Virus record (IMG/VR): IMGVR_UViG_3300048121_001678
Coordinates: 1 to 64,000 of that record
Direction: 5' to 3' (one strand)
DNA: 64,000 bases
In this document: positions 20,328 to 44,830 of the stretch, one piece after another
How positions within the stretch are numbered: position 1 is the stretch's first letter
Layout: each line of letters starts with the position of its first letter
Notes under the pieces: model-generated
The model's database searches: none
What the model was told of the DNA's origin: nothing
What the model saw: only the letters and a program-made list of their open reading frames with translations
Made by a program: the position numbers and the translations under genes

Positions 20328-20332
20328 TTATT

Positions 20333-21476: not shown

Positions 21477-21483
21477 AAGTATT

Positions 21484-22266: not shown

Positions 22267-22302
22267 ACTAAAATTTTAATATAATATAATAGAATTGTTG
22301 TA

Positions 22303-23907: not shown

Positions 23908-23932
23908 GTCTAATATTTTACTATAAATACTT

Positions 23933-24571
23933 TTATATCCAAGAATCTTTCTCATAACCGAATTTAGTGAAGTACGGTCTCATTCTTTCATAAACATAGT
24001 CCGCAATCTCTTGAGTATAAAATCTCTTATATTTTTGAAATTGACCTTCATAAACATCATAAGGTGAACCATTTTTATATAAATTATTATTAATAGTATC
24101 ATTAATAATATCATCCATGTGCTCATCATGTTCAAAAAACGGTAATTTACGTAAGTCATCTTCCATTGTTTCCATATGAATAATAAAGTCAGGTTCTTTG
24201 TGAAAATGAACCCACTGTCTTAAGAAAAACGTTCCATAAGATTCCATATTACCTTTACTAAAATGTTGAGTTTTAAGGTAGTCAAAAAAATCCAATTCTT
24301 CCCCATTTTCTTTATACTCAGTTAATATATCAAGATATGATGACACCACTAACGAATACGGGTTTCTAACGTTACATATTAATTTATAGTTTTTAGTACC
24401 TTTAGGAAATCCCTGTTCATGAGTAAATGAAACTTTTTCACCGCAATAATCTTTATGAATATGATTATATAAGTCTTCAACACCCATAGACATAAAATAA
24501 CCATACGTTGTTCTTGAAGCACATCCAGCGGTTCCCCACCAAACAAATTTAAATTTTTCACTTACATTCAT
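23933..24571 (-). CDS. Sulfotransferase-family (Sulfotransfer_2-like) protein (start re-set to MNVSEKF)
   Basis: VRNPYSLVVSSY, DFIIHMETMEDD and YTQEIADYVYE...FGY; the canonical 5'-PSB Lys is not evident (GTAGCASRT). Confidence 0.7.
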   Translation of the reverse strand: MNVSEKFKFVWWGTAGCASRTTYGYFMSMGVEDLYNHIHKDYCGEKVSFTHEQGFPKGTKNYKLICNVRNPYSLVVSSYLDILTEYKENGEELDFFDYLKTQHFSKGNMESYGTFFLRQWVHFHKEPDFIIHMETMEDDLRKLPFFEHDEHMDDIINDTINNNLYKNGSPYDVYEGQFQKYKRFYTQEIADYVYERMRPYFTKFGYEKDSWI

Positions 24572-24646
24572 ATTTACTGATTTTACTTTAAACGTATATT
24601 TATTGGTATATATAATAAAGTTAAACTTAAATAAAGAAATATCATT

Positions 24647-24778
24647 ATGGGATGCGGTTGTAAAAACAAACAAAATAATCAAGCTAAGACTCAGACACAA
24701 ACTCAGTCACAAAACACACAAACTCAGGTACAAAACGCCATTAAAAAAACGGTTGAGAAGTATTACGAAAAGAAGTAA
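24647..24778 (+). CDS. 43-aa MGCGCK micro-protein (not in ORF track)
   Basis: MGCGCKNKQNNQAKTQTQTQSQNTQTQVQNAIKKTVEKYYEKK, followed by a terminator at about 24805-24830. Confidence 0.65.
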   Translation: MGCGCKNKQNNQAKTQTQTQSQNTQTQVQNAIKKTVEKYYEKK

Positions 24779-24856
24779 TATTTCAAAAACTTAAAGATTA
24801 AAACAAAAGGAGATTAATTCTCCTTTTTTTTGTATTTATAGTAAATTAACATTACA

Positions 24857-25831
24857 ATGGACTTAATTGAATTTTTAGAAGATAACGACCTCGGAGATTT
24901 CATCAAGAAATATTTCAACGGTAATACTGAGTCTTTTATGAAATTCCTTCAATCTAAAGGTATTATTGAGGAGATGATGGACCACCTAATAGAAGAAGGT
25001 TATCTAACTGATGTTATGAATATATACTACGAGGATAACCCTAAGTTTGTCATTGAGTTCTTATTGGGTTACCTTGACGATGTTTTTATGGATGGTGGTA
25101 AATATTGGATGCAAATTAGCCGTGAAGATATGTTTAGGTTTTTTGAAGATGATAGAGATAATTCTCAAGGATTAGCCAAATTAGTATTACAGGAAGATGT
25201 ACCTTTTTTAGATATAAACTCTGAAATTTATGACCTCACTGATTTTATTAGCGACCTTACACCTGAGAATGTAAGTTATCTAAAGTCTTTGGTTTATAAT
25301 GAAGTTGAAGGTAAGGAAGTTGAAATCGATGGGGTAAAAGATATTGTTACTGTAGATGTCATCAACAATATGGATGACGATGAATTATCAAAATTAATCA
25401 AAGAAAGTTCACCTAACGTATTATCAGAATTGGAAGGTATTAATAGGAGCGCTGAAGAATCTGCCATCTACGACGAATTGTACGATGACGTAATGAATGG
25501 ATTACGAGACTTATTTGATGAACATTTCTTCTCACGTGAGATTCCATATAAAAGGAAGACTTACAAATCCGGAACCAATGAACCAATCGAAGTTCAAGAT
25601 TTTCACTACCAGGTAGACGTAACAAAACTTTTACCAAAAGTCGTTAAGGAAGTATTAAGTTGGGGAGGTTACAGTAGTGATAACGACTTTGAATATTACG
25701 GTAGCTTAGAATCACTTTTAGAATATTACTTAGATGAAGAAGGTGAACAAATTCGAGTATCTTGGCCTGAATGGGCTGACGATGAAAAAGTCAGAGAATT
25801 TATCAATGACAACTTCCAAGATTATCTATAA
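24857..25831 (+). CDS. Hypothetical acidic protein
   Basis: 324-aa ORF; TATTTAT at 24833-24839. Confidence 0.75.
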   Translation: MDLIEFLEDNDLGDFIKKYFNGNTESFMKFLQSKGIIEEMMDHLIEEGYLTDVMNIYYEDNPKFVIEFLLGYLDDVFMDGGKYWMQISREDMFRFFEDDRDNSQGLAKLVLQEDVPFLDINSEIYDLTDFISDLTPENVSYLKSLVYNEVEGKEVEIDGVKDIVTVDVINNMDDDELSKLIKESSPNVLSELEGINRSAEESAIYDELYDDVMNGLRDLFDEHFFSREIPYKRKTYKSGTNEPIEVQDFHYQVDVTKLLPKVVKEVLSWGGYSSDNDFEYYGSLESLLEYYLDEEGEQIRVSWPEWADDEKVREFINDNFQDYL

Positions 25832-25884
25832 TATCTTATTTTCTTTAGTCTCTTTATACTTATATTTTAAATAAAAATTAAAAC

Positions 25885-26463
25885 ATGAGAGTAAATTCAT
25901 TAATTATAGATGATTTCTACAATAATCCTTATGAGGTTAGAGAATTTGCATTAGAACAGGATTTCAACGTCACAGGTACCTTTCCAGGTTTTAGAACCAA
26001 ACCATTCGTAAATGAATCCATTAAAGACACTATCGGAGATATTCTTAGACCTTTTGCTGGTGAAATTACATGGTGGGGTGGTGAGTACACAGGCTCATTT
26101 CAATTCACAACCTCAGATGACCGCTCATGGATACATTCAGATTCATATACTGATTGGGCAGGTGTATTATATTTAACACCTGACGCACCAATTACTGCAG
26201 GTACAGGAATCTATAGACATAAACATACAGGACTAATTAATTGGGATTATGAATTACATAAAGATGATGATTTTGACCCGAAATCACCCATAGAAACCGC
26301 GAGAGATATAACTAAGTGGGAGCAAGTTGATAGATATGGTAATTTATTTAACCGACTAGTTATGTATAGAGCGGATAACTTCCACATTTCATTAGATTAC
26401 TTCGGTAAAGATTTAAATGATGGGAGACTTTTCCAAGTATTCTTTTTTAACACCGAAAAATAA
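25885..26463 (+). CDS. 2OG-Fe(II) oxygenase-like protein (DUF6445-like)
   Basis: IIDDFYNNP, FPGFRT, WIHSD (HxD), AGVLYL, NRLVMY...FH and RLFQVFFF. Confidence 0.75.
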   Translation: MRVNSLIIDDFYNNPYEVREFALEQDFNVTGTFPGFRTKPFVNESIKDTIGDILRPFAGEITWWGGEYTGSFQFTTSDDRSWIHSDSYTDWAGVLYLTPDAPITAGTGIYRHKHTGLINWDYELHKDDDFDPKSPIETARDITKWEQVDRYGNLFNRLVMYRADNFHISLDYFGKDLNDGRLFQVFFFNTEK

Positions 26464-26465
26464 CC

Positions 26466-27197
26466 ATGAAACATTTTTTTAATCAACCACTTATTAACCC
26501 TAACTTAGATGTTGAGAGTTTAAAAAATGAATTTAACAATAATAGAGTTGTTGTAATTAAAAACTTTTTAAACCCGATAATAGCCGAAAAACTACATAAG
26601 TGGTTTACAGAAGAAATGCCTAAGGACTGGTGGAGAATATCTTCATACCCAAAAATGGACGGTGAAGATGGTTTTGATTTATTACCTTTTGATGATAAAT
26701 TCTTACCTCAAATACAAGAAATGTATACACATTCAATAAATTCATTTAAGGATGATAAGTTTTCTTACAATTTTCATAGAACCGTTAATGACCATCAAGA
26801 CACTTGTAACTGTTATGAGTGTGGATTTAGAGACGCACTGATAAGTGATGAAATTTTAAATTTCTTAAATGGTATAACCAACCAAGGCCTAACAAGTACT
26901 GACGAAGTGTTTGGTGCGGTATATTTACCAGGTGACTTCTTAGCACCACATCAAGATTCACCGAACGGAACATTAGGTTTTACTTTACAATTATCCAAAA
27001 ATTGGAAACCTCAATTTGGTGGTAATCTACATTTTATGGACGGTCCTAATGGTGATATTGAAAGAGTTGTAGTACCTACTTTCAATACATTAACTATTTT
27101 TGATTTACCTAAAGGGATTGGTAAATGGCATTATGTATCTACAGTTTCACCAGGTGTTGAAGAATTAAGACTCACTTACGCTGGGTGGTTCAAATAA
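26466..27197 (+). CDS. 2OG-Fe(II) dioxygenase, prolyl-hydroxylase-like
   Basis: YLPGDFLAPHQD (HxD), W..QFGGNLHF, PTFNTLTIF, HYVSTV and RLTYAGWF. Confidence 0.85.
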   Translation: MKHFFNQPLINPNLDVESLKNEFNNNRVVVIKNFLNPIIAEKLHKWFTEEMPKDWWRISSYPKMDGEDGFDLLPFDDKFLPQIQEMYTHSINSFKDDKFSYNFHRTVNDHQDTCNCYECGFRDALISDEILNFLNGITNQGLTSTDEVFGAVYLPGDFLAPHQDSPNGTLGFTLQLSKNWKPQFGGNLHFMDGPNGDIERVVVPTFNTLTIFDLPKGIGKWHYVSTVSPGVEELRLTYAGWFK

Positions 27198-27632
27198 TTC
27201 AGGGTTGGTATATATTGATAGGTTTGTTAATGTTTCAATACAGTAGCATTCAGAATATGAAGTCTTATGTTCATCATATTTTTTAAACCCTAACATAAGT
27301 GGTCTAAACATATGATTACGACTATCCCAAAGTAAATCATAATCATACCCTAAGTCGGTTAATATATCATATACTTCATAATGATATGATTCGACAATTT
27401 TAATATCAGGTATTTCTTGATTAAATTCAATCAACTCATTTCTTAATTCGATTAAATTTTTTTTTGTTGTATCTATTTTTTTTACAAATGTTGGATATAT
27501 TGATAGCATATCATAAAATTGTGTTGTTCCTTCAATCTTTTTACCCTGATTCATGTTATAAACCATTAAGATAAAAGGAGTTTCGGAATCTATTAAACTC
27601 TGAAACTCCTCTTTACTATATCTTATTAACAT
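27165..27632 (-). CDS. Hypothetical protein
   Basis: 155-aa ORF within the hydroxylase cluster. Confidence 0.65.
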   Translation of the reverse strand: MLIRYSKEEFQSLIDSETPFILMVYNMNQGKKIEGTTQFYDMLSIYPTFVKKIDTTKKNLIELRNELIEFNQEIPDIKIVESYHYEVYDILTDLGYDYDLLWDSRNHMFRPLMLGFKKYDEHKTSYSECYCIETLTNLSIYTNPELFEPPSVSES

Positions 27633-27633
27633 A

Positions 27634-28251
27634 TTATTTGTAGTTTGGTCCTGATATCCATGCGACTAAAGATTTACGGTTACCTTCAATCACTGGTAAT
27701 ACTCTGTGTAAAATAAATGATGGGAATACTATCACACCACCTCTTTTCTTTGGAAGGTCTAAATCTCTTGAACCAATCTTTAAATTGATGTCTCCTCCTT
27801 CATAATCTTCTTCATCACTTAACTGTACAATGATTGAAAGTTTTCTGTGTGACACACCTGGTCCAATATCAGCATGCCATGAATAATGTCCTTCATCCTC
27901 ACCGAAGTATTGTGTATACTGTAATGTATCACCAAAACCAATAAGGTCGAAATTCCAATTCATTTCAACATTAGCTTCAATTGATGCCGCCGCTAACCTA
28001 TCAAAAATCCATTTAGTTTCATTAGATATGTCAATCCAACCAACTTTACTTCTTCTTATTTCAGGAACAATATGTAACCCATCTTCTCCACCACCTACTT
28101 CAGCATCTGATAAATTTGTTAATTCACCCCACTGAATGATGTAGTCTAATTCTTCATCAGTGAAGATATCCTCGAAATAATAATAGTGTAAATGTTCAAC
28201 CATTTTATCACGGTAGAACTCAACAAACGGGTCTGAATAAATGTATTCCAT
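27634..28251 (-). CDS. 2OG-Fe(II) dioxygenase, PKHD/P4H-type
   Basis: QYTQY, HYSWHAD, RKLSIIVQLS, YEGGD, VFPSFILHRV and RKSLVAWISGP. Confidence 0.9.
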   Translation of the reverse strand: MEYIYSDPFVEFYRDKMVEHLHYYYFEDIFTDEELDYIIQWGELTNLSDAEVGGGEDGLHIVPEIRRSKVGWIDISNETKWIFDRLAAASIEANVEMNWNFDLIGFGDTLQYTQYFGEDEGHYSWHADIGPGVSHRKLSIIVQLSDEEDYEGGDINLKIGSRDLDLPKKRGGVIVFPSFILHRVLPVIEGNRKSLVAWISGPNYK

Positions 28252-28306
28252 ATCTTTAATTTTTAAAAATATAAACTAACATTGTAATTAAATAAATAAG
28301 AAACAT

Positions 28307-29776
28307 ATGAAAATTATAGATACATTTATGTTTAGAGATGAACTCGACCTTTTGGAGTTCAGATTAGAATATCTTTATGACCATGTAGACTACTTTGTAT
28401 TAGTTGAATCTAACGTAACACATAGAGGTAATCCTAAAACTATATTCTATTCTTTATATAAAGACCGTTTTGAAAAATATCAAGATAAAATAATACATGT
28501 ATTATCAACTGAAATACCTAAAGTAGTGAGTGGTACTATGACAAAAGAAGATAAATATGTGTACCGTGAAAAATTACAAAGGAGTAAAATATTAGATGGT
28601 TTGTCTGAAATAAATGTTTCATATGAAGATATCATATTAGTTTCTGATATTGATGAGGTACCTGACCCTAAGACATTTAATACTCTACCTAAATTATTAT
28701 CTATGTCACCAGTTATATTTAAACAAGATTGGTTAGTATGGAACGGTACATTAAAAAGAAAAGATAAATGGTTAGGTACTACTGCGTTCTATAAGACACA
28801 TTTAATACAAGACCCAATTGAAATAAATAATACTCGACAATACGATATAATGAATAACCCAAGTGATTATTTATCTATTGATTCAGGTTGGCATCTTAAT
28901 TGGTTTGGTGATATAGATGATTCACTTAATAAAGTTTTTAACTCTTCTAATCGAGAAAGAGATTTTAATTATTACCACTTAAAAAAAACTTTTAGAGATT
29001 TAATAATCGACAAAAGGTACCCACATACTAACCCAACCAAAATAGAATATTTAGAATCAACTAATGATTATGATATCCCCGATAATTTACCATTTTTTGA
29101 TGTGAGTAAATACCCATCAGTATATGATGTGGTCATTTATGATGGTGAAGAGGAGGCTCTATTAATAAGACTTAATGAGTTATATCTTTCTGTCGATTAT
29201 TTTGTAATCTTTGAAGGTAAACATAATAAAGATAAGTTTTTATATCCTGAGATTTTTGATAAAATTAGAGATTTTGAAGATAAAATTATTTACGTACAAT
29301 TAGACGATTACAGTTCAATGAATAATACGGTATTCGAATTTGAGACTTCGATGATTAAAGAAACTCTATCTCATCTTAATCTGAAAGATAACGATTATAT
29401 TTATTTTTCCGATATAGAATGCATCCCATCTTTTGATAATTTTGAAAATAATATGTATGACTTTGAAAGATACGAATTAGAGTTCGTATCACTTAGAATG
29501 AGATGGTTCTATAAAGATTTTAAACATGAGTTAACTGATAGGTATTACGGTACAATCCTAACTAATTGGTCTAAATTAAAGCATAGTAGTCTAAGTGAGT
29601 TTTATTACTTAAGAAACGAACCTGTTTATTCAGTAATTTATGATAGAGGTTTTTACTTATGTAACTTTTATAAAGATAATTACACTCTATATGATATAGA
29701 TGTGGTTATACCTACAATAGACGATAACTACTTACCGAAATATATTAATAATGACTATTTAATTGATTTTGTATAA
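28307..29776 (+). CDS. Tandem GT17 (MGAT3-like) glycosyltransferase
   Basis: IIDTFMFRDELDLLEFRL...VDYFVLVES...SDIDEVP...GWHLNWF; a second, degenerate copy begins VYDVVIYDGEEEALLIRL. Confidence 0.8.
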   Translation: MKIIDTFMFRDELDLLEFRLEYLYDHVDYFVLVESNVTHRGNPKTIFYSLYKDRFEKYQDKIIHVLSTEIPKVVSGTMTKEDKYVYREKLQRSKILDGLSEINVSYEDIILVSDIDEVPDPKTFNTLPKLLSMSPVIFKQDWLVWNGTLKRKDKWLGTTAFYKTHLIQDPIEINNTRQYDIMNNPSDYLSIDSGWHLNWFGDIDDSLNKVFNSSNRERDFNYYHLKKTFRDLIIDKRYPHTNPTKIEYLESTNDYDIPDNLPFFDVSKYPSVYDVVIYDGEEEALLIRLNELYLSVDYFVIFEGKHNKDKFLYPEIFDKIRDFEDKIIYVQLDDYSSMNNTVFEFETSMIKETLSHLNLKDNDYIYFSDIECIPSFDNFENNMYDFERYELEFVSLRMRWFYKDFKHELTDRYYGTILTNWSKLKHSSLSEFYYLRNEPVYSVIYDRGFYLCNFYKDNYTLYDIDVVIPTIDDNYLPKYINNDYLIDFV

Positions 29777-30583
29777 TAAATTGTCACCATCGTATTTCAT
29801 GGTTTCATAATTAGAATGCAAGTCTTTAATAAAATTTTCTATGTGTTTATTACATATTAATTTATTATCTAACTTAATAATTATGAATATTTGAAATATC
29901 ATTGATATTACTTGGGTTTCATCAATAATTGAATTATCATCTAACTTATTATCGTTAATAGTTAAAGACTTAAACTGATATTTTGGATAGTTTCTCTTAA
30001 GTTCCCTAACTAACTTTTTACTCCCACCACTTAAAAATACTTTTTCACCATCTTTAATTTTTTTAATAATTAAGTTTTTAGATTGTTCATATGTTAAGTC
30101 ATCCACATTCATTATTAAATGACTTTCCATTATAAGTCTTTCAAGAATATTAATGAAATTATCGTAATACTTATTTTCAATTTTAAATAAACTTAATAGA
30201 GTATTTTTAAAATCCTCACCCTTATTGAAATCTAAGTAATTTAATAAATCTCGATTATTATATAAATGTAGTACATCACAGTCATTATATACCGAATTAA
30301 AACTATCCGTTTCAAATGAATTTAAACCATCATTAGGAATGTCTAATAAATTTAATCTACCATAAGTGTATTCTTTACTATCCCAATCTCTTTCCCACCA
30401 ATTAATTTTAGACGTAAAATATTCGACTAAAGGAATACCTTCAGTATCGTTAATTCTAAAATTCCATCCATGAGTTTTTGCAAATATAAATGCAGCAACT
30501 GATGAGTGTAACTTCTCAATTAATGTTTGATTTGTAGAATTAAAAACTATAAATTTATTTGATAATGTTGGTACGTAATCCAT
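29759..30583 (-). CDS. Putative fucosyltransferase/NodZ-like glycosyltransferase (divergent)
   Basis: Weak resemblance only: SSVAAFIFAKTHGW..RI at the N-terminus and KVFLSGGS...ELK in the C-terminal half. Confidence 0.35.
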   Translation of the reverse strand: MDYVPTLSNKFIVFNSTNQTLIEKLHSSVAAFIFAKTHGWNFRINDTEGIPLVEYFTSKINWWERDWDSKEYTYGRLNLLDIPNDGLNSFETDSFNSVYNDCDVLHLYNNRDLLNYLDFNKGEDFKNTLLSLFKIENKYYDNFINILERLIMESHLIMNVDDLTYEQSKNLIIKKIKDGEKVFLSGGSKKLVRELKRNYPKYQFKSLTINDNKLDDNSIIDETQVISMIFQIFIIIKLDNKLICNKHIENFIKDLHSNYETMKYDGDNLLYKIN

Positions 30584-30628
30584 ATTTTTTTATTAAAAAA
30601 TAATTAATACTCAACAAAAAGAAATATC

Positions 30629-34687: not shown

Positions 34688-37600
34688 TATTCAACTATTG
34701 TTTTAAGTGTATTTAATCTATTTTGTAATTTCTCAATAATTACCATATGTTCTTGAACTGTACCAATACCTAAGTTGGTTATCAAATCATATTTTAAAAC
34801 ATGAACACCATCTTTATCTTTAAATATAACCTCGGGTAGTACTTCTTCAACTTCCTGAGCAATAAAACCTAATGACTCACCTTTTAATGTGGGTCTATGA
34901 GTTTTAGTAAAATTGTCATCATTCCATTCAAAATAAAGACCTTTTAACATTAAAAGTTTTTCTAAATTACCTTTTAACCCTTTTAAATTATCTTTATATC
35001 TAATATCCGATGCTGGACCTTGTGCTCCTGTTGGACCTTTATCACCTGTATTTCCTCTACCACCTTGTGGTCCCGTTGAACCTTGTGGCCCTACATCATC
35101 ATAACCTCTAGGTCCTTGTGGACCTTTTTGACCTTTCGGTCCTGGATTGGCATAACCTTTTGGTCCTTTAGTAGTGACCGCATCACCTTGAGCACCTTGA
35201 GCACCTCGTGCACCTTTACTTCCATCCACACCATCAGGACCATCATTGCCCGTGGCACCTCTGAAACCTTTAGCACCTTTATTACCCTTAGGTCCTTTGT
35301 CGTTAGATGCTGGACCTGTTGAACCTTGTGGACCCTGTGGTGATGCACCTGTTGAACCTTGTGGTCCTCTAACTCCTTGTGGTCCTCTATTACCTGTTTG
35401 TTTAGGCCCTTTATCTCCCGTAGGTCCTTGTGGTGACGCACCTGGCGCACCTCTATTACCTTTAGGTGAAACACCCTGTGGTCCTTTGGTTCCTCTGAAA
35501 CCTTTTTCACCAACATAACCTTTTGGCCCTTTAGCACCCTTATCTCCGACACCACCAGTGTTACCTCTATTACCTGTCGCACCTTTATAACCTTTTGGTC
35601 CTTTAGGTCCATCAGCTGCGTTATTACCAACATAACCTTTTGGACCTTTATCATTAGATGTTGGTCCTGTTGAACCACCATCACCAATGTCGATACCACC
35701 TTTATAACCTTTAACACCTTTAGCACCTACCGGTCCTGTTGAACCACCTGGTCCTGGATTGTTAGCACCTGTTGGTCCTGTTGAACCTCCACCCGCTCTA
35801 GCACCTTGTGGTCCTCTCGGTCCTTGAATAATTGGTCCTTTGTCCCCACCTGGTCCTTGTGGTGATGCACCTTGACTACCTCTATTACCTTTAGGTGAAG
35901 CACCCTGTGGTCCTTTGGCTCCCCTGAATCCTTTATTTCCAACAAAACCTTTTGGTCCCTTAGCACCTTTATCTCCAATACCACCAGTTCCACCTCTATT
36001 ACCTGTTGCACCTTTATTACCTTTTGGCCCTTTTGGACCATCAGGTGCGGTAAAACCTTTATAACCTTTCGGTCCTTTGTCGTTAGATGTCGGTCCTTTA
36101 GGTCCCGGATTTGCATAACCTTTAACACCTTTAGGTCCTGGATTTGCATAACCTTTTGGTCCTTTTGGTCCAGGATTGTTACTACCAACATCACCTGTTG
36201 AACCTCCATCACCTGTATTACCTCTTGGTCCTTGTGGTGAAGAACCAGTACCACCTCTATTACCTTTCGGCGATGTACCCGTTATACCTTTAGCACCTTG
36301 TGGTGAGTTACCTGTAGCTCCTTTAGTACCTTTAAGTCCTTTTTGCCCTTTTTGTCCTTTGGCTCCCGCTCCACCAGTAGCACCTCTATTACCTTTTGGT
36401 CCGTCAGCACCAGTGGCACCTCTATTACCTTTTGGTCCGTCAGGTGCAGTATATCCTTTGGTACCTTTATTACCTTTTGAACCCGTAGGTCCTTGTGGTC
36501 CTTGGTTACTATCACCTGTTGAACCACCTGGTCCTTGTGTTGAGTCACCTACGGGCCCTTGTGGTCCTTGATTACTATCTCCTGTTCCACCTTGGTTACC
36601 TTGGCTACCCTGTGAACCTTGTGGCCCTTGGGGAGATGCCCCTGTTGAACCTCCTGGACCTTGTGGTGATGCTCCTGTTGAGCCTGTCGCCCCTTTTGGT
36701 GAATTACCTTGAACCCCTTTGGCACCTTGTCCACCTTTATATCCTTTAACACCTTTAGGTCCTTGTGAACCTTTAAAACCTTTTAGACCTTTTGGTCCTG
36801 CAGGTGCTGTTGGTCCTTTAATACCTTTGGCACCTTGTCCACCCTTTTGTCCTTTTTGTCCCGTAGGACCTGTTGAACCACCGGGTCCTTGTGGTCCTGG
36901 ATTGGCTTGACCTTTTTGTCCTTTCGGTCCTGGATTGGCTTGACCTTTTTGTCCCTTATCACCAGGACTACTAATACCTGTAGGTCCTGTTGAACCTCCA
37001 CCTCCTGCACCACCTCTATTACCTTGTGGTGATGAACCCTGAGAACCTTGTGGTCCTTGCGGTGAGTTACCTTGTGGACCTTTAGCACCTTGTGGTGATG
37101 AGCCCTGTCCACCTTTTATTCCTTTTATACCTTTTATACCTTTGTTACCTTTTGGACCATCAGAACCTGTAGTACCTTTTGTACCTTTAGCACCATCAGC
37201 ACCTGTAGTACCTTTTTGACCTTTTTGACCATCAGGAGCAGTCGGACCTTTAACACCCTTTTGACCTTTTTGTCCCGTAGGACCTTGCTCTCCCTGATTA
37301 CTATCACCTGTTGAACCTTGTGGTCCTTGTGTTGAACTACCTGTTGAACCTTGTGGTCCTTGAGTTGAGGACCCAACCCCACCTTGATTACCTTGTGAAC
37401 CTTGATTACCTTGTGAACCCTGAGGTGAATTACCTTGTGGACCTTGTGCACCTTGTGGTGAAGAACCTGTAATTCCCTGTGGTCCTTGTGGTGAAACACC
37501 TTGAGGACCTTTCTGTCCTTTTGGTGAATTACCCTGAACACCTTTCTGTCCTTTAAAACCTTTTTCACCAATGTTACCTTTCGGCCCATTAGAACCCTTA

Positions 37601-38634
37601 AATCCTTTACTACCTTGGGAACCTTTTACACCTTTCTGTCCTTTATTACCTTGTGGTCCATCATTACCTTTCTGACCTTTTTGTCCTGACTCACCTATGG
37701 GTGCAATTGGTCCTTTGTCTCCACCTGGACCTGTAGAACCAGTTGGTCCTTGACCACCTTGATTCGTTTCACCCTTAGGACCTTTTTGTCCTGGTGTAGG
37801 GTCACCCTGTGGCCCTTGTGGTCCTTGATTACTATCACCTGTAGAACCACCTACTCCCTGTGGACCAGCACCACCTGTTCCTCCTCTTGGGGATGAACCT
37901 GTCGAACCTTGTGGACCCTGTGGTGAGTTACCCTGAGGACCTTTTAACCCTTTTGGTGAATTACCTTGGCTACCTTTAAAACCGTCAGAACCCTGACCGC
38001 CTTTTACACCTTTAAAACCTTTTGGTCCGTCAGGTGCAATATTTCCTTTATCACCTTTATTACCTGATGCACCTGTAATACCTTTTTGACCTTTTTGACC
38101 TTTCGGCGCCGTAGGACCTTTGATACCTTTGATACCCTTATTACCCTTTTGACCCTTTTCACCTACTTCACCAACTAATCCATTATCACCTTGTGAACCA
38201 TTATCACCTTGGAAGGTGTCACCTGTTGAACCTGTTTCTCCTGGATTATTTTGACCTGTCTGACCTTTTTGTCCTTTGAATAAAAGACCTTTATTACCCT
38301 TACTACCCGTACTACCTTTATCTCCTTTAACACCTTTCTCACCAGTATCACCTTTAGCACCAGGTGTTACACCATCACCTTTAGCACCTTTTAAACCCTT
38401 TTCACCAACAACACCGTCTATTCCTATATTACCCTTACTACCCTTATTTGGTTGGTTACCTTTCTCACCAATAGGACCTTTTAACCCCTTAATATTAGTT
38501 GTAGTAGCTGTCCAAATACCATCCTCATTTACTACGTCGATACCACCAACACGTAGACCTTTGTTCATCTTTGTTGGAACGTAAATTTTCATCCTTGTAG
38601 ATGCATCTGCTATGTGAAAAAGATTTTGTTTCAT
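34687..38634 (-). CDS. Collagen-like tail fibre 2 with S74 chaperone; lacks the shared N-terminal anchor
   Basis: Interrupted Gly-X-Y; PASDIRYKDN...GFIAQEVEEVLPE; TAATG coupling to fibre 1. Confidence 0.9.
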   Translation of the reverse strand: MKQNLFHIADASTRMKIYVPTKMNKGLRVGGIDVVNEDGIWTATTTNIKGLKGPIGEKGNQPNKGSKGNIGIDGVVGEKGLKGAKGDGVTPGAKGDTGEKGVKGDKGSTGSKGNKGLLFKGQKGQTGQNNPGETGSTGDTFQGDNGSQGDNGLVGEVGEKGQKGNKGIKGIKGPTAPKGQKGQKGITGASGNKGDKGNIAPDGPKGFKGVKGGQGSDGFKGSQGNSPKGLKGPQGNSPQGPQGSTGSSPRGGTGGAGPQGVGGSTGDSNQGPQGPQGDPTPGQKGPKGETNQGGQGPTGSTGPGGDKGPIAPIGESGQKGQKGNDGPQGNKGQKGVKGSQGSKGFKGSNGPKGNIGEKGFKGQKGVQGNSPKGQKGPQGVSPQGPQGITGSSPQGAQGPQGNSPQGSQGNQGSQGNQGGVGSSTQGPQGSTGSSTQGPQGSTGDSNQGEQGPTGQKGQKGVKGPTAPDGQKGQKGTTGADGAKGTKGTTGSDGPKGNKGIKGIKGIKGGQGSSPQGAKGPQGNSPQGPQGSQGSSPQGNRGGAGGGGSTGPTGISSPGDKGQKGQANPGPKGQKGQANPGPQGPGGSTGPTGQKGQKGGQGAKGIKGPTAPAGPKGLKGFKGSQGPKGVKGYKGGQGAKGVQGNSPKGATGSTGASPQGPGGSTGASPQGPQGSQGSQGNQGGTGDSNQGPQGPVGDSTQGPGGSTGDSNQGPQGPTGSKGNKGTKGYTAPDGPKGNRGATGADGPKGNRGATGGAGAKGQKGQKGLKGTKGATGNSPQGAKGITGTSPKGNRGGTGSSPQGPRGNTGDGGSTGDVGSNNPGPKGPKGYANPGPKGVKGYANPGPKGPTSNDKGPKGYKGFTAPDGPKGPKGNKGATGNRGGTGGIGDKGAKGPKGFVGNKGFRGAKGPQGASPKGNRGSQGASPQGPGGDKGPIIQGPRGPQGARAGGGSTGPTGANNPGPGGSTGPVGAKGVKGYKGGIDIGDGGSTGPTSNDKGPKGYVGNNAADGPKGPKGYKGATGNRGNTGGVGDKGAKGPKGYVGEKGFRGTKGPQGVSPKGNRGAPGASPQGPTGDKGPKQTGNRGPQGVRGPQGSTGASPQGPQGSTGPASNDKGPKGNKGAKGFRGATGNDGPDGVDGSKGARGAQGAQGDAVTTKGPKGYANPGPKGQKGPQGPRGYDDVGPQGSTGPQGGRGNTGDKGPTGAQGPASDIRYKDNLKGLKGNLEKLLMLKGLYFEWNDDNFTKTHRPTLKGESLGFIAQEVEEVLPEVIFKDKDGVHVLKYDLITNLGIGTVQEHMVIIEKLQNRLNTLKTIVE

Positions 38635-38677
38635 CGTTATATATAAATAGTTTAAGTAATTTAAATTTAAATTTTAA

Positions 38678-38818
38678 TTATGTCTCTTGTGAAAATAATA
38701 ACTCACCTGTTGTAGTCATCTCAATCATATAAGTCACCCCCGTACTTCCCGAGAATAAAACATGTGGGTTTGTATTTGCTGTAGTACCCGATGGGTAAAC
38801 AATTATAGTTTTAGCCAT
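38678..38818 (-). CDS. 46-aa stand-alone fibre-anchor-like peptide (not in ORF track)
   Basis: MAKTIIVYPSGTTANTNPHVLFSGSTGVTYMIEMTTTGELLFSQET resembles the N-termini of fibres 1 and 3; TAATG-coupled to fibre 3. Confidence 0.7.
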   Translation of the reverse strand: MAKTIIVYPSGTTANTNPHVLFSGSTGVTYMIEMTTTGELLFSQET

Positions 38819-41800
38819 TATATTTTATTTTTTAAATAAGTAATATCTTTATCAATATCATCAATCAATATCTGTTGTTCTTTAACCGCTTCAACTAAGT
38901 AAGCATTTAATAAAGAATAGTGTATACCTAAATAACCTTCTTTATTTCTAAAGACCACCTCAGGTATAATCTTATCAATCTCTTGTGCAATAATACCTAT
39001 TGAGTGTAATTTATCACGTTCTTTAAGGTACTCGTACATTGGTAAAGTCATGTTCCAATCATACTCCTTTAGTTCAATTTTTAATAACTTATCTAAAGAA
39101 CCAACAAGAGTATTAATTTCTTTTTTCAACCTTATATCTGATGGTGGAGGTGTCGGTCCATTAAAACAGTCTGGTTCTTGTGCAGCCACAAAACAAATAC
39201 TTAAATCAACAAGGTAAATTTCAATAGTACCAGGGTTGTTAATAAATACTATACCACCACGACAACCAGTGTTGTCACAGTTTTCACATCCTGAATCAGT
39301 CAAAAATGTACAATTCATGTTCCAACTCGAACAGTCGGGAGAATAGAAAGTTTGTAAGTTAGGTTCATCACAAATTGCGTCAGGGATATCACAATTGAAA
39401 TAGGTTTGAATTGCATTACAACCACCACCTGGTCCTGGAGGGCCAATGTCACCATTAGACCCTCTATATCCTTTAGGTCCTACACCACCTTGGTTACCTC
39501 TATTTCCTTTGTAAGTAATACCAATATTACCTTTTTGTCCCTTTTCCCCTATTGGTCCTTTTGGTGATGAACCTGTTGAACCTTGTGGTCCTTGATTTCC
39601 TCTAAAACCTTTATATCCTTGAGGACCTTTTATCCCTTTATTACCTTTTGGTCCTGGATTCGCATTACCTTTTGGTCCTTTGTCGTTAGATGTCGGGCCA
39701 GTTGAACCTATACCTCCTCTAGCTCCTTGTCCTCCCGGAGGACCATCAGGTCCATCAGCACCCGTGTCACCTCTGAAACCTTTATCACCAATATAACCTT
39801 TTGGCCCTTTAGCTCCCTTATCTCCGACACCGCCAGTGTTACCTCTGTTACCTGTTGCACCTTTATAACCTTTTGGTCCTTTATCTCCATCAGGTGCGGT
39901 TGGACCCTTGTTACCTTTTGGCCCTTTGTCGTTAGATGTTGGTCCTGTTGAACCACCATCACCAGTATCTATACCGCCTTTATATCCTTTAACACCTTTA
40001 ACACCTACCGGTCCTGTTGAACCACCTGGTCCTGGGTTAGGTGCACTTACGGGACCTAAAGAACCTTGTGGTCCTCTAACCCCTTGTGACCCTCTTGGTC
40101 CTTGTACCTTTGGTCCTTTATCTCCTGTAGGTCCTTGTGGTGACGCGCCTGGTGCACCTCTATTACCTTTAGGTGAAGCACCCTGTGGTCCTTTGGCACC
40201 TCTGAAACCTTTTTCACCAACAAAACCTTTTGGTCCTTTCGAACCTTGGTCACCAACACCACCTTGTGGTCCTCTGTTACCTGTAGCACCTTTATAACCT
40301 TTTGGTCCTTTAGGTCCATCAGGTGCGGTAAAACCTTTATAACCTTTCGGTCCTTTGTCGTTAGATGTCGGACCAGTTGAACCACCATCACCAATGTCGA
40401 CACCACCTTTATAACCTTTAACACCCTTAGTTCCCGTTGGCCCTGTTGAACCACCTGGTCCTGGATTGTTAGCACCTGTTGGCCCTGTTGAACCCGTACC
40501 AGCCCTATCACCCTGTGGACCAACTGGTGAATCACCTGTTGAACCTTGCGGACCAGTTGGTGACGTACCCGTAGAACCTCCCGGTCCTTGAGGTGAGTTA
40601 CCTTGTGGTCCTTTATTACCCGCAGTCCCTTTAAAACCTTTTAACCCTTTTGGTCCGTCAGCACCTTGGAATCCTTTTGGTCCTTTTGGTCCTGTAGGTG
40701 CAATATATCCTTTATTACCTTTTGGACCTGTAGGTGCAGTGTATCCTTTATCACCTGTTGGTCCTGTTTCCCCTGGGTCACCTTGTGGTCCAGGATTGGC
40801 ATATCCTTTTGGTCCTTTTGGTCCTGGATTACCGAAACCTTTTGGTCCTTTTGGTCCAGGATTATTACCACCTGTTGGTCCTGTTGAACCTCCACCACCT
40901 GTATTACCTCTTGGTCCTTGTGGTGAAGAACCAGTTGCTCCTCTATTACCTTTTGGTGATGAGCCTTGTGTTCCTTTGTTACCTTGTGGCGAGTTACCCT
41001 GTGGTCCTTTAGTACCTTTAGTACCTTTATTACCTTTATTACCTTTTGGTCCGTCAGCACCCGTAGCACCTCTATTACCTTTTGGCCCATCAGGTCCTGT
41101 AGTACCTTTTTGTCCTTTTTGTCCATCAGGTGCGATTGGACCCTTAATACCTTTTGGTCCTTTATCTCCTCCAGGTCCTTGTGGTCCTTGGTTACTATCA
41201 CCTGTTGAACCCCCTGGTCCTTGTGTTGACGCACCTGTTGGCCCTTGTGGACCTTGATTACTATCACCTGTCCCACCTTGGTTTCCTTGACTACCCTGTG
41301 AACCTTGTGGTCCTTGTGGTGACGCACCTGTTGAACCACCTGGTCCTTGCGGTGACGCTCCTGTTGAACCATTTCCACCTTTTTGAGAATTACCTTGAAC
41401 CCCTTTGGAGCCAGTTCCACCTTTAAATCCTTTAACCCCTTTAGCACCTTGGGAACCTTTGTTACCTTTATTACCTTTTGAACCAGCAGGTGCTGTTGGC
41501 CCTTTTAAACCTTTATCACCTAACCCACCCTTTTGTCCTTTTTGTCCCGTAGGACCTGTTGAACCACCGGGTCCTTGTGGGCCAGGATTGGCTTGACCTT
41601 TTTGACCTTTAGGTCCTGGATTGGCTTGACCTTTTTGACCTTTCGGTCCAGGATTATTTGAACCTGTTGGTCCTGTTGAACCACCAACACCCGTATTCCC
41701 TTGTGAACCTTGTGGTGAAGAACCTGTTGTACCTCTATTACCTTGAGGCGAGTTACCTTGTGGTCCTTTGGCACCTTGTGGTGAGTTACCTTGTGGTCCT

Positions 41801-43677
41801 TTATTACCTTTTGTACCCTTTTCACCAATAATACCTTTAGGTCCCGTATTACCTTTTTGACCTTTATTACCTTTTGACCCTACTGAACCTTTTACACCTT
41901 TATTACCTTTTGGTCCATCGTTACCTTTCTGACCTTTCTGACCTGGCTCACCAAAAGGTGCCGTCGGTCCTTTATCACCACCTGGACCAATTAAACCAAC
42001 GGGTCCTTGTGGACCTTGATTGGTATCACCTTTAATACCTTTTTGTCCAACATTAGAATCACCTAATTGTCCTTTTGGACCTGGATTTGCATCACCTTGA
42101 CCACCTTGTACTCCCTGTGTTGAATCGCCAACACCACCTTGAGTTCCTTGACCACCTTGTACTCCCTGAGGACCTTGTGGTGATGCCCCTGTTGAACCCT
42201 GAGGACCTTGTGGTGAATTACCTATAACCCCTTTATTACCTTGAGGGGAGTTACCCTGAGTCCCTTTAATTCCTTTTATACCTTTGGCACCTTTAAACCC
42301 TTTGGGTCCAACTGCACCTTTTACACCTTTTACACCAATTAAACCCTTGACACCTTTTTGTCCTTTTTCTCCAGCCTCACCATCAGGTGCAATAGGACCT
42401 TTAATACCTTTAGTACCTTTTTGTCCTTTCTCCCCCGTAGGTCCTTTAGGTCCAGGATTGTTATCACCAACAGGTCCTCGACCACCTTGAGTCTGCTCAC
42501 CTTTTTGGCCTTTGTCACCAGGTATATCTTCACTAGTAGGACCTGTAGAACCTTGGAAATTATCCCCAACAATCCCAACGTTACCCTGAGAACCTTTTAC
42601 ACCTTTACTACCTGTAATACCTTTTGGTGAACTACCTTGACTACCTTGACTACCTTTAGGGTTATTACCTTTCTGACCCTTTTCACCCAATTCGGTTTCA
42701 CCTTTCTGTCCTTTAAGACCTTTCTCACCTGTATCTCCGATATTTCCTGACTGAAACTGTTCAAAACTACCATTAACCATCACATCTGTAGATGTAATGG
42801 AATTAGTTAACGTAACACCATCTAAGAAGTTACCACCATTACTACTAGTTGTTGAACTAAATGTTAATACTAAACTACTATCTGTAGGTGTGAATGTGTG
42901 TGTATTTACTGTCCATTGGCTATTTGATGCAGTATAGTTACCTAAGTTAATATTTGTTGAACCACCAATAATAGTGACATTCATTATATTATCAAAAGAT
43001 GACCTACCTCTATGTGCAAAAGAAAGCACATACTCTTGACCCGAAACTACTGTAACTGTTTGTTGTAAGGCGTGTTTTTGTGATACTCTTGAATTGATTT
43101 CGGCAAAATAACTACCTGAATATGAAGGGACGTTTGAAAATCCACTAGCCCAAATTTCCACTACATTATCTGATGCAGTTGGGTCCCAACCTGGAATACA
43201 GTCTTCATAGAACCATGTAAACGTTGTTGGTGGTGGTGGACACGAACCTCCGAAACCATCTTCACCTTTATCACCTTTTTGACCTTTTACATTTTCACCT
43301 ACAGGACCTAAAATACCTTTTACACCCTTAGCACCTTTATAACCTTTATCACCTTTTACCTGATTGGTACCTTTTTCACCTTTAGGTCCTAAATCCCCTT
43401 TAATATTAGTGTCATTACCTATCCAATCACCAGCACTGTCTATTGTACTTGCTAATTTAAAATCAATGTCATCGACAAAATCAATATCACCCTTAACATT
43501 AAAGTTAAGTGTATCCGCGTCTATTTTTACTATCTCGTCACCCTGTGTTTTTCCTGAAAATACTAAAGAACCATCACTTTCTACGTTCATACGTATTTCA
43601 TCACCACTACTATTTGTGAAAAGAATATACGGGTTACCCCCTGAAGGGTTAGGTACAATTTTTATGTTCTTAGCCAT
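38818..43677 (-). CDS. Collagen-like tail fibre 3 with DUF642/CBM-like insert, Cys-rich tip and S74 chaperone
   Basis: Gly-X-Y stalk; beta-sandwich insert (IPGW...VEIW...FAEIN...LQQTV...LSFAHRGR...FLDGV); Cys-rich segment; PPSDIRLKKE S74 motif. Confidence 0.9.
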   Translation of the reverse strand: MAKNIKIVPNPSGGNPYILFTNSSGDEIRMNVESDGSLVFSGKTQGDEIVKIDADTLNFNVKGDIDFVDDIDFKLASTIDSAGDWIGNDTNIKGDLGPKGEKGTNQVKGDKGYKGAKGVKGILGPVGENVKGQKGDKGEDGFGGSCPPPPTTFTWFYEDCIPGWDPTASDNVVEIWASGFSNVPSYSGSYFAEINSRVSQKHALQQTVTVVSGQEYVLSFAHRGRSSFDNIMNVTIIGGSTNINLGNYTASNSQWTVNTHTFTPTDSSLVLTFSSTTSSNGGNFLDGVTLTNSITSTDVMVNGSFEQFQSGNIGDTGEKGLKGQKGETELGEKGQKGNNPKGSQGSQGSSPKGITGSKGVKGSQGNVGIVGDNFQGSTGPTSEDIPGDKGQKGEQTQGGRGPVGDNNPGPKGPTGEKGQKGTKGIKGPIAPDGEAGEKGQKGVKGLIGVKGVKGAVGPKGFKGAKGIKGIKGTQGNSPQGNKGVIGNSPQGPQGSTGASPQGPQGVQGGQGTQGGVGDSTQGVQGGQGDANPGPKGQLGDSNVGQKGIKGDTNQGPQGPVGLIGPGGDKGPTAPFGEPGQKGQKGNDGPKGNKGVKGSVGSKGNKGQKGNTGPKGIIGEKGTKGNKGPQGNSPQGAKGPQGNSPQGNRGTTGSSPQGSQGNTGVGGSTGPTGSNNPGPKGQKGQANPGPKGQKGQANPGPQGPGGSTGPTGQKGQKGGLGDKGLKGPTAPAGSKGNKGNKGSQGAKGVKGFKGGTGSKGVQGNSQKGGNGSTGASPQGPGGSTGASPQGPQGSQGSQGNQGGTGDSNQGPQGPTGASTQGPGGSTGDSNQGPQGPGGDKGPKGIKGPIAPDGQKGQKGTTGPDGPKGNRGATGADGPKGNKGNKGTKGTKGPQGNSPQGNKGTQGSSPKGNRGATGSSPQGPRGNTGGGGSTGPTGGNNPGPKGPKGFGNPGPKGPKGYANPGPQGDPGETGPTGDKGYTAPTGPKGNKGYIAPTGPKGPKGFQGADGPKGLKGFKGTAGNKGPQGNSPQGPGGSTGTSPTGPQGSTGDSPVGPQGDRAGTGSTGPTGANNPGPGGSTGPTGTKGVKGYKGGVDIGDGGSTGPTSNDKGPKGYKGFTAPDGPKGPKGYKGATGNRGPQGGVGDQGSKGPKGFVGEKGFRGAKGPQGASPKGNRGAPGASPQGPTGDKGPKVQGPRGSQGVRGPQGSLGPVSAPNPGPGGSTGPVGVKGVKGYKGGIDTGDGGSTGPTSNDKGPKGNKGPTAPDGDKGPKGYKGATGNRGNTGGVGDKGAKGPKGYIGDKGFRGDTGADGPDGPPGGQGARGGIGSTGPTSNDKGPKGNANPGPKGNKGIKGPQGYKGFRGNQGPQGSTGSSPKGPIGEKGQKGNIGITYKGNRGNQGGVGPKGYRGSNGDIGPPGPGGGCNAIQTYFNCDIPDAICDEPNLQTFYSPDCSSWNMNCTFLTDSGCENCDNTGCRGGIVFINNPGTIEIYLVDLSICFVAAQEPDCFNGPTPPPSDIRLKKEINTLVGSLDKLLKIELKEYDWNMTLPMYEYLKERDKLHSIGIIAQEIDKIIPEVVFRNKEGYLGIHYSLLNAYLVEAVKEQQILIDDIDKDITYLKNKI

Positions 43678-43806
43678 TAAATGTTAAAATATATAGGTTT
43701 ATAGTAATAAATATTACAGAATCAATTTCTTAACAATAAATACATGTCAAGTCTTTAAGATGTGATTTAATTTTAATATAATTTCATAAAATAAGTTTAA
43801 GAAAAT

Positions 43807-44523: not shown

Positions 44524-44552
44524 AAAGAAAGGGGACCGAAGTCCCCTTTTTT
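44523..44552. terminator. Bidirectional intrinsic terminator
   Basis: aaaggggac-cgaa-gtccccttttttt between convergent genes. Confidence 0.85.
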
Positions 44553-44830
44553 TATAAGAATTGTTTTACTTTTTCCAACGCTTCGTGGATGTCATCAAAA
44601 TCCCTGTCGGGCGCCATCAACTTCACATCGTTAACCTGTTCACCCTCATGTTCAATCAACATAAAAGCAGGAATAAATTCATTACCTGTTGCCTCTACAA
44701 ATATGTCATACTCTTTTTCATACTCATCAATATCTCTTTCAGTGTAATCCACATTAGATTCTTTAAGTAAATCCTTTATCTCATCGCAAAAAGGACAACC
44801 GTTCATTGAGTATAATATAACCGTTTTCAT
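44552..44830 (-). CDS. Glutaredoxin
   Basis: LYSMNGCPFC active site. Confidence 0.85.
   Translation of the reverse strand: MKTVILYSMNGCPFCDEIKDLLKESNVDYTERDIDEYEKEYDIFVEATGNEFIPAFMLIEHEGEQVNDVKLMAPDRDFDDIHEALEKVKQFL

Follow-up and report, generated by a model that had tools for sequence, protein, structure and literature searches.

A candidate collagen hydroxylation and glycosylation pathway encoded beside S74-bearing collagen fibre genes in a jumbo phage

Hydroxylation of collagen and glycosylation of its hydroxylysines are generally ascribed to animals, Mimivirus being treated as an oddity. Whether a bacteriophage might treat its own fibres in a comparable manner is the question raised by a stretch of 64,000 nucleotides (the window), positions 1-64000 of the 297,164-bp IMG/VR contig IMGVR_UViG_3300048121_001678, in which three collagen-like fibre genes lie beside a cluster of putative modifying enzymes. 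An earlier note on this DNA, made from the letters alone, had proposed that positions 23933-43677 hold a phage counterpart of procollagen maturation. The length of the contig places it in the jumbo-phage class (genome >200 kb), and its relatives are found on contigs of 183-430 kb. The answer offered here, which we hold with slightly better than even confidence, is that the fibres of this ~297-kb phage would be hydroxylated, most likely on lysines in the Y position of Gly-X-Y triplets, and then glycosylated by an LH3-like glycosyltransferase (GT), with S74 domains that would trimerise the chains and cut themselves off.

The three collagen-like genes of 1315-1619 aa described in the note were all found in place on the minus strand. 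These are colA (30629-34687), a 1352-aa interrupted collagen-like fibre, and its paralogues colB (34687-38634, 1315 aa) and colC (38818-43677, 1619 aa), with Pfam Collagen matches of E 4e-59, 4e-61 and 1e-54 and Peptidase_S74 matches of E 2e-13, 3e-10 and 8e-11 respectively. The paralogues are 53-64% identical across more than 1000 residues, colB sharing 57-64% with colA and colC, and colA has orthologues in L003, L004, L013 and L014 (L-numbers denote the viral loci used for comparison). Collagen open reading frames (ORFs) of 4-5 kb with such scores, conserved in relatives, lie far beyond chance. When runs of at least four are counted each protein holds 237-246 Gly-X-Y triplets (246 in colA), and the claimed richness in G-P-x and G-x-K triplets is borne out by the residue counts: Pro takes the X position 60, 46 and 62 times in colA, colB and colC, which is ~25% of triplets, and the Y position 2, 0 and 5 times; Lys takes the Y position 92, 96 and 99 times and the X position never. 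The Y position is ~40% Lys as against ~14% Thr. Each collagen is broken at 41-45 points by G-x4-G interruptions, mainly of the form (N/A/S)SP(Q/K), e.g. GNSPQ, GASPQ and GSSPQ.

All three proteins carry a Pfam S74 domain at the extreme C-terminus, with cores, delimited by Pfam and aligned motifs, at residues 1242-1301 of colA (30785-30964), 1209-1269 of colB (34828-35010) and 1513-1575 of colC (38953-39141), all on the minus strand. The SDxxxK motif aligns as SDRRLK, SDIRYK and SDIRLK in colA, colB and colC, and a second aligned motif, G(F/I)IAQE, is common to them. From endosialidase work we take the Ser and Lys of SDxxxK to be the catalytic dyad at the cleavage site. The cleavable C-terminal chaperone that had been claimed is therefore present as a domain and a motif in every chain, the cleavage itself being predicted. 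When GenBank phages are searched with these S74 domains, the closest matches are to proteins annotated as tail fibres, that of Synechococcus phage S-CAM9 ranking first. The domain matches support a reading of colA, colB and colC as collagen plus S74 fibre proteins that are predicted to trimerise and self-cleave. The three probably differ in role, because colC alone has a Cys-rich domain of ~85 residues (1420-1505) just before the S74 cleavage site and a weak Pfam match to a DUF642-like (galactose-binding-like) domain at residues 197-280, whereas in colA and colB the collagen extends up to the cleavage motif, so that predicted cleavage would leave bare collagen ends. The N-terminus of colA is a non-collagen domain of ~90 aa similar to the N-terminal ~90 residues of colC, and it is presumably through these two domains that the fibres are attached to the virion.

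The enzyme that most directly recalls animal collagen maturation lies 9 kb from the collagen cluster. The PLOD-like GT predicted at 52731-54611 (minus strand, 626 aa) matches Pfam GT_PLOD at E 1e-63, and a phmmer search of the PDB returned human LH3 (E 2e-50), Mimivirus R699 (E 5e-41) and COLGALT1 (E 3e-6). Residues 16-183, the GT domain, align with LH3 14-178, and residues 339-624, an accessory GT-like domain, align with LH3 187-491; between them lies a methyltransferase-like insert (184-338). The catalytic motifs DSYD (the metal-binding DxxD), the Trp of CWP and the His of HGNGP align between the phage protein and LH3, and all three positions are invariant in an alignment of GT domains (A1). 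Both R699 and LH3 have been shown experimentally to be collagen galactosyl-hydroxylysine (Gal-Hyl) glucosyltransferases, and their DxxD, Trp and Tyr residues are either essential or conserved (PMC9546862). The conservation supports a true homologue of the LH3/R699-type collagen glycosyltransferases with its metal and UDP motifs intact; its predicted acceptor is (galactosyl-)hydroxylysine of collagen, to whose genes it is tied by genomic association, and its predicted donor UDP-glucose. The protein has neither a fused oxygenase nor a GT25 domain. Its insert is a decayed methyltransferase, the S-adenosylmethionine motif LDxGAGDGKW of 692-aa homologues being replaced by CDLNPLNGRYG; the sister forms comprise proteins of 477 aa with no insert, 692 aa with an intact methyltransferase and ~920 aa with an added GT25 domain, the last in the jumbo lineage. 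A gene for a leucine-rich-repeat protein (54986-56299, minus strand) always adjoins the LH3-like GT in the jumbo lineage. A pattern-based scan for the GT domain in prokaryotic species-representative genomes gave two hits, neither near collagen, a result that does not prove absence.

How often such a GT is found with collagen was investigated using alignment A1, with which 80 viral loci encoding a PLOD-type GT domain were collected; 80 ThyA (thymidylate synthase) loci served as the control. A collagen-like ORF was present in the fetched flank (10 kb) at 45 of the 80 PLOD-GT loci and at none of the ThyA loci (Fisher p 9e-18), although the counts are not phylogenetically independent, because the loci are interrelated, and they weigh less in favour of the proposal for that reason. 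The 80 loci form 11 GT clusters at 50% identity, six of which have collagen-adjacent members. A GT25 domain was found at 66 of the 80 loci, homologues of the window's 205-aa oxygenase at 32, and homologues of its DUF6445 protein at 10, always beside the module. Among the 137 GenBank hits of the S74 domains, Synechococcus phages alone recur in the list of PLOD-GT hits.

It is also clear from these loci that the parts recur as an operon. At more than 30 loci the gene that comes after collagen plus S74, in the same orientation, encodes a homologue of the 205-aa oxygenase; in some cases a DUF6445 homologue is next, and a fusion of GT25 and PLOD-GT domains ends the operon. The full operon is carried by the cultured cyanomyoviruses S-CAM9 (L005), S-PRM1 (L189) and S-8S55 (L191). 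In these three phages a conserved ORF of ~124 aa stands between the collagen plus S74 gene and two oxygenase genes, and just downstream in S-8S55 are a 'tail assembly chaperone' and two further oxygenases. In the Roseobacter siphophage CRP-6 (L192, MK613348.1, positions 33029-36641) a collagen tail-fibre gene lies two genes from a GT25 plus PLOD-GT gene. The fibre, gp60, annotated as a 'putative tail fiber protein', has 99 triplets with Thr at 48 and Lys at 26 Y positions; gp58 is the GT25 plus GT_PLOD protein and has a weak C-terminal 2-oxoglutarate (2OG) oxygenase signal; and the annotation of the module's genes goes no further than hypothetical or tail fibre. CRP-6 was considered as an instance of collagen and GT without an oxygenase, and was dropped on account of this fused oxygenase-like domain. 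C-terminal oxygenase domains of the kind were found in 49 of 85 GT proteins, with HxD...H, a Lys or Arg ten residues past the second His, and (K/R)xS intact, and the 49 cover all of the loci first scored as oxygenase-free. These phage GT fusions thus pair hydroxylase and glycosyltransferase modules, as do LH3 and Mimivirus L230. The same parts are carried by L028, L038 and L047, two of which are metagenome-assembled genomes (MAGs) of giant viruses.

The oxygenases of the window are related, judging from their sequences, to those of this widespread phage operon. Three different 2OG-Fe(II) oxygenases had been reported beside the collagen genes, and three were recovered, with matches to 2OG-FeII_Oxy_3, DUF6445 and 2OG-FeII_Oxy_4/3. 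The 205-aa enzyme (27634-28251, minus strand; 2OG-FeII_Oxy_3, phrog_61) has an H126-x-D128...H182 triad and R192-x-S194 that are invariant in 22 sequences, with a basic residue at +10 from the second His. Its AlphaFold2 (AF2) model (pLDDT 85.5) gave 4iw3, 6t8m, 4j25, 2jig, PHD2 and 5c5t as top Foldseek matches (E 1e-12 to 1e-8, TM-score 0.6-0.7), placing it nearest to protein prolyl 4-hydroxylases (P4Hs) and PiuC-type proteins; its best sequence matches are PKHD/PiuC proteins, and the profile of its family (A2) recovers PBCV-1 vCPH, Chlamydomonas P4H and Bacillus anthracis P4H. The model thus points to a P4H/PHD-type structure for the oxygenase conserved in the module, not to a lysyl hydroxylase (LH) of the PLOD type. 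The 192-aa DUF6445 protein (25885-26463, plus strand; Pfam DUF6445 E 2e-11, phrog_1644) is cupin/2OG-oxygenase-like with a conserved H84-x-D86...H167, and a sequence search of the PDB returned nothing useful for it. The 243-aa oxygenase (26466-27197, plus strand) matches Pfam 2OG-FeII_Oxy_4/3 at E 4e-12, and its PDB matches, the putative hydroxylase 9blq, Tpa1 and P4H-alpha-like proteins, are all weak.

Which residue would be hydroxylated can be approached from the collagens themselves. Animal-type prolyl 4-hydroxylation was ruled out by the residue counts, because with Pro at 2, 0 and 5 of the ~240 Y positions such an activity would be practically without substrate. Totals for 47 module-adjacent collagens show the same pattern, with 1802 Lys at Y, 15 Lys at X, 1866 Pro at X and 69 Pro at Y. 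Every collagen beside an oxygenase has Y-position Lys (at least 6% of triplets), the median for Pro at X being 30%, and two of them are nearly free of Pro (L089, 1 Pro vs 32 Lys; L028, 2 vs 10). Collagen lysyl hydroxylases act on Lys in the Y position (PMC9546862). Lys is clearly favoured over X-position Pro as the predicted target, since Y-Lys is the LH site, the homologues of the GT belong to the hydroxylysine pathway, and Y-Lys occurs in every oxygenase-adjacent collagen. Hydroxylation of both residues may occur, given three oxygenases in the window and two or three in many of the operons.

The proposed pathway would run as follows. Three long interrupted collagen chains would be made in the host cytoplasm and, while unfolded, would be hydroxylated within G-X-Y by the 205-aa, DUF6445 and 243-aa oxygenases, the likeliest targets being the ~95 Y-position lysines per chain (G-x-K-G), with X-position Pro as the alternative. 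The LH3/R699-like GT would then add a hexose to the new hydroxyls. The decoration might be extended or sulfated by three further products described below, a tandem GT17, a 274-aa orphan (unk274) and a sulfotransferase-like enzyme. The S74 domains would trimerise the chains and nucleate the helix from the C-terminus, before cutting themselves at the Ser of SDxxxK, in the role of the procollagen C-propeptide.

Comparison with jumbo-phage relatives separates a conserved core from a variable island. On contigs of 63-430 kb the GT has a recurring neighbourhood of DUF5661, Hc1, DnaJ, Dam, leucine-rich-repeat protein, GT, thioredoxin and glutaredoxin genes and then two or three large genes, which are 40-73% Gly-X-Y in every relative with enough sequence and most of which have the S74 motif. 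This GT-collagen synteny holds down to 36% GT identity. As the large genes of the neighbourhood stay collagen-like even at that distance, the collagen genes together with the LH3-like GT make up a core that is conserved within a broad lineage of jumbo phages. The island (25885-30583) consists of DUF6445, oxygenase, unk155, oxygenase, GT17 and unk274 genes and is restricted to the window and a few of its close relatives. Homologues of unk324 and of the 550-aa and 260-aa genes that flank the cluster are kept in L013 and L015, and L013 also keeps the sulfotransferase-like gene.

A number of observations weigh against the proposed pathway, and the most serious comes from these same relatives. The earlier note had regarded collagen-bearing relatives without the enzymes as telling against its reading, and such relatives do in part exist: in L013 and L015 three collagen genes persist, as does the LH3-like GT, but the three oxygenases, GT17 and unk274 are missing from the locus. 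No oxygenase of the relevant types was detected when ~330 kb of the lineage's sequence beyond the island was scanned with two profiles. It is here that the hypothesis is weakest for the window's lineage: either the oxygenases are elsewhere in those genomes or the GT needs no hydroxylation there. The expectation that the enzymes accompany collagen across related genomes was upheld for the PLOD-GT, P4H-like and DUF6445 genes, which are operon-linked across distant phages and giant-virus MAGs, but for GT17, the 243-aa oxygenase, unk274 and unk155 the tie to collagen does not extend beyond close relatives of the window. GT17 occurs at none of the 80 PLOD-GT loci, and beyond the close relatives it was seen in one unrelated 642-kb phage, without collagen or oxygenase within 15 kb, which leaves its connection with collagen weak. 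The best-conserved oxygenase resembles a prolyl hydroxylase, which sits poorly with Lys as the target, and a PLOD-type LH domain was matched neither by the window oxygenases in the PDB nor by profile A2 at E<=1. There is no GT25/COLGALT-type gene in the 64-kb window, and R699-type enzymes require Gal-Hyl, although Mimivirus L230 itself puts glucose on hydroxylysine (PMC9546862). The first sugar on a hydroxylysine would therefore have to be supplied either by the LH3-like GT, acting as L230 does, or by GT17 or unk274. The one counter-example among the GT clusters is a viral cluster of 13 members, where three GT25 genes are present and collagen is missing within 10 kb. The sub-lineage L027, L029-L032, L034, L035, L041, L043, L044, L046 and L050 has the arrangement [GT25][GT25][GT25+PLOD-GT+accessory domain] with no collagen-like ORF within 10 kb, and possibly represents another substrate for the same enzyme family.

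Other readings of the locus have to be set against these results. The oxygenases could hydroxylate X-position Pro in G-P-K, G-P-Q and G-P-T, and the GTs could glycosylate the hydroxyproline, as in Dictyostelium Skp1 or plant hydroxyproline O-glycosylation; alternatively hydroxyproline might just stabilise the helix. The fold and profile neighbours of the module oxygenase (PPHD, Dictyostelium PHD, PHD2, Chlamydomonas P4H, PBCV-1 vCPH and B. anthracis P4H) favour this, as do the lack of any lysyl hydroxylase match at E<=1, the abundance of X-position Pro in the window and beside oxygenases generally, and the finding that Pro at X can be hydroxylated by a bacterial P4H (PMC8968730). However, the classical P4H site is nearly absent, L089 and L028 are nearly Pro-free yet bear Y-Lys, and the homologues of the GT, namely LH3, R699 and COLGALT-type GT25, are all enzymes of the hydroxylysine pathway, and a purely proline-directed system is considered unlikely. 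It is more improbable still that the GTs glycosylate the fibres with no hydroxylation at all, for example on Thr or Ser as in the GPT repeats of Bacillus BclA, with the oxygenases serving some other end. Glycosylation of the BclA type is already known (PMC8968730), collagens of the cyanophage type and of CRP-6 have ~50% Thr at Y, and there are the jumbo relatives with GT and collagen and no oxygenase detected nearby; but in the operons the oxygenase adjoins the GT or is fused to it with its active site intact, and the window collagens are far richer in Lys than in Thr at Y.

The remaining alternative places the fibres outside the activity of the island altogether. Its enzymes, and the sulfotransferase-like one, would be auxiliary or directed at the host (surface glycans, metabolites or nucleic acid), their adjacency to collagen reflecting a hypervariable insertion hot-spot. 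That the island is a low-GC block of mixed strands, which L013 and L015 do not have here, fits such an origin, as does the fact that GT17 and the Oxy_4 oxygenase never accompany collagen beyond close relatives; the PKHD/PiuC affinities of the 205-aa enzyme point the same way, and arrays of dioxygenases in cyanophages have been read as secondary-metabolite genes (Iyer et al. 2010, PMC2938197). What makes this reading quite unlikely is that homologues of the 205-aa and DUF6445 proteins sit between fibre and GT genes at dozens of loci in other phage lineages, and that a sulfotransferase homologue recurs beside the module. Hydroxylation of the fibres followed by LH3-like glycosylation therefore remains the preferred reading for the window. 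Its extension to phages at large is offered more tentatively, at somewhat less than an even chance: that unrelated marine tailed phages, among them T4-like cyanophages, a Roseobacter siphophage and Flavobacteriales jumbo phages, may carry a self-contained collagen hydroxylation-glycosylation pathway for their own fibres, with a core of GT25, LH3-like GT and oxygenase, either together or split as in the window.

Comparison with known systems shows how far the likeness to animals goes. With PLOD1-3/LH3 and COLGALT1/GLT25D1 the phages share a GT that is an LH3 homologue in both its GT and its accessory domain and keeps the catalytic motifs, a fused GT25 (COLGALT-family) domain in the operon form, a putative Y-position Lys substrate, a 2OG oxygenase coupled or fused to the GT, and a C-terminal trimerisation domain removed after folding, the last being a prediction on the phage side. 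They differ in that the oxygenase is small and P4H/PHD-like instead of a PLOD LH, that the window has no GT25, that the process would take place in the bacterial cytoplasm and not in the endoplasmic reticulum, that Y-position Pro or hydroxyproline is missing, and that the S74 domain is an autoprotease whereas the animal propeptide is cut by a separate proteinase. The animal-like pathway of the earlier note is accordingly upheld in its glycosyltransferase, an LH3-type homologue, but not in its hydroxylases, since Y-Pro is nearly absent and no window oxygenase belongs with the PLOD lysyl hydroxylases.

Virus-encoded collagen hydroxylation and glycosylation has been established for Mimivirus (PMC9546862), which combines collagens (L71 and others) with the lysyl hydroxylase/glucosyltransferase L230, the Gal-Hyl glucosyltransferase R699 and the P4H L593 and whose R699 is a direct homologue of the window GT. 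In contrast, the present case concerns a tailed bacteriophage, S74-bearing collagens and a hydroxylase family other than the LH of L230. S74 domains with SDxxxK are found in the K1F endosialidase, the T5 L-shaped fibre, the lateral fibres of rV5-like phages, KVP40 and cyanophage fibres, but mostly no collagen-modifying enzymes accompany the fibre. BclA, B. anthracis P4H and PBCV-1 P4H provide microbial and viral examples of collagen-like repeats and small P4H-type oxygenases, vCPH and the B. anthracis enzyme being detectable relatives; the glycans of BclA, however, are on Thr and are added by unrelated GTs, neither LH3- nor GT25-type. The predicted operons of Iyer, Abhiman, de Souza and Aravind (2010) place a sulfotransferase beside oxygenases and collagen-like or tail-collar proteins, and led to the prediction that bacterial collagen-like proteins are hydroxylated and then sulfated (PMC2938197); these are bacterial, have beta-hydroxylase and PhyH oxygenases, and lack glycosyltransferases. 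A review treats prokaryotic collagens as generally unmodified and phage collagens as trivial (PMC8968730), and the role of abundant viral 2OG/'P4HA' genes has been said to remain 'cryptic' (PMC9301287). The R699 papers do not mention phages, and a literature search found no paper tying phage collagen fibres to LH3-, GT25- or P4H-type enzymes. Against the known systems the logic of the pathway is unchanged and the GT homologous; what differs is the type of virus, the S74-chaperone fibre and the oxygenase family.

If the proposal is true, part of the cryptic viral 2OG/P4HA genes, and on the wider reading many of those in ocean viromes, would be genes for fibre maturation and not for metabolism, and modification would add a layer to host recognition, fibre stability or the evasion of host defences or grazers. 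The enzymes would be expressible in bacteria for modified recombinant collagen, and the metazoan LH3/COLGALT machinery would have close phage siblings, which would throw light on how the collagen-modifying enzymes of metazoans evolved. As the module is present in cultured S-CAM9, S-PRM1, S-8S55 and CRP-6, the idea can be tested directly.

The other genes of the island and its flanks are less readily assigned. The tandem GT17-family glycosyltransferase that had been reported is present (28307-29776, plus strand, 489 aa; Pfam GT17 E 7e-31 over two matched stretches) and has no relative in the PDB. The 274-aa orphan unk274 (29759-30583, minus strand), directly downstream of colA, is likely the 'possible fucosyltransferase' of the earlier note; the ORF exists, and its identity is doubtful. 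It has no match in Pfam, PHROG or NCBIfam, only four homologues, and is missing in L004. The top six Foldseek matches of a low-confidence model (pLDDT 60.6) are fucosyltransferases (FUT8/NodZ/FUT1; E ~3e-3, TM-score ~0.35), no HxRxxD-type motif was spotted by eye, and the model makes a fucosyltransferase a guess. A separate gene with a weak match to GT11, the alpha-1,2-fucosyltransferase family, lies at 19695-20627 in the 430-kb relative L015, a few genes past the collagen cluster. The 155-aa ORF unk155 (27165-27632, minus strand) is 50-54% identical in L003 and L004 and has no family match in Pfam, PHROG or NCBIfam.

The sulfotransferase-like gene is present as described (23933-24700, minus strand), but its match to Pfam Sulfotransfer_1 is just above the cutoff (22.7 vs 22 bits), and it has no match in the PDB, PHROG or NCBIfam. 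It probably starts at the ATG at 24571, giving 212 aa, and a P-loop-like GTAGCASRTT and an RNPYSLVVSS motif can be seen by eye. L013 retains a homologue (39% identity) past its collagen genes, and L056 and L071 have one beside the GT fusion; this borderline domain match and the three co-occurrences are suggestive of a link to the fibres, though a weak one.

Two genes bracket the collagen genes in all relatives. On one side unk324 (24857-25831, plus strand), a very acidic protein of 324 aa with no significant family match and no identifiable enzyme, has homologues at the same position in L015 (L015_351, E 5e-20) and L013 (L013_339), and in distant relatives its homologues converge on the last collagen gene. 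On the other, a divergent gene upstream of colC (43807-44523, plus strand) encodes 238 aa without a match in Pfam; a homologue occupies the same position in L014 (E 7e-9), and L006-L011 have counterparts by position. From their position these two proteins may be fibre assembly factors. Three conserved flanking genes (21069-23955, minus strand), encoding a DUF2452-like protein of 135 aa and proteins of 260 and 550 aa, follow the collagen genes in all relatives. Directly upstream of the collagen cluster is a thioredoxin and glutaredoxin pair (44552-45147, minus strand), kept there in all jumbo relatives, and a glutathione peroxidase gene is found at 13155-13664. A link of the pair to oxygenase chemistry or to the disulfides of colC is possible.

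Megablast of the enzyme block and of the 44-58 kb region against GenBank phages gave no matches. The window has an overall GC content of ~0.33. The collagen genes reach 0.37-0.48 compared with 0.27-0.34 in the surrounding genome (window 30001-44000 vs flanks), because of their Gly and Pro codons, and the enzyme island, with genes in mixed orientation, has the lowest values (0.27-0.33). No tRNA was found by a scan of the 64 kb. The phage genes of the window include ThyA, two DNA methyltransferases, peptidoglycan-binding cell-wall hydrolases, a PcfJ-like protein and DnaJ. A giant-virus origin was considered and rejected because of the cell-wall hydrolases, the TonB-dependent receptor, Dam and PcfJ, together with synteny with phage contigs.

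The TonB-dependent receptor (48150-50708, minus strand, 852 aa; Plug and beta-barrel) shares 72-81% identity with receptors of cellular origin, among them one named from a Flavobacteriales MAG, and the host is for this reason probably a Flavobacteriales bacterium. The phage receptor lacks the N-terminal CarboxypepD_reg domain of its cellular counterparts; among the relatives it is found in L006-L008 and is absent from L009/L014 and L011-L013. It is one of several large auxiliary genes, which also comprise the thioredoxin, glutaredoxin and glutathione peroxidase genes, a sulfatase with an SGSH_C domain (5587-7188, minus strand) and a glutamine-synthetase-like gene (45482-46612, minus strand), the last two being uncommon auxiliary genes for a phage.

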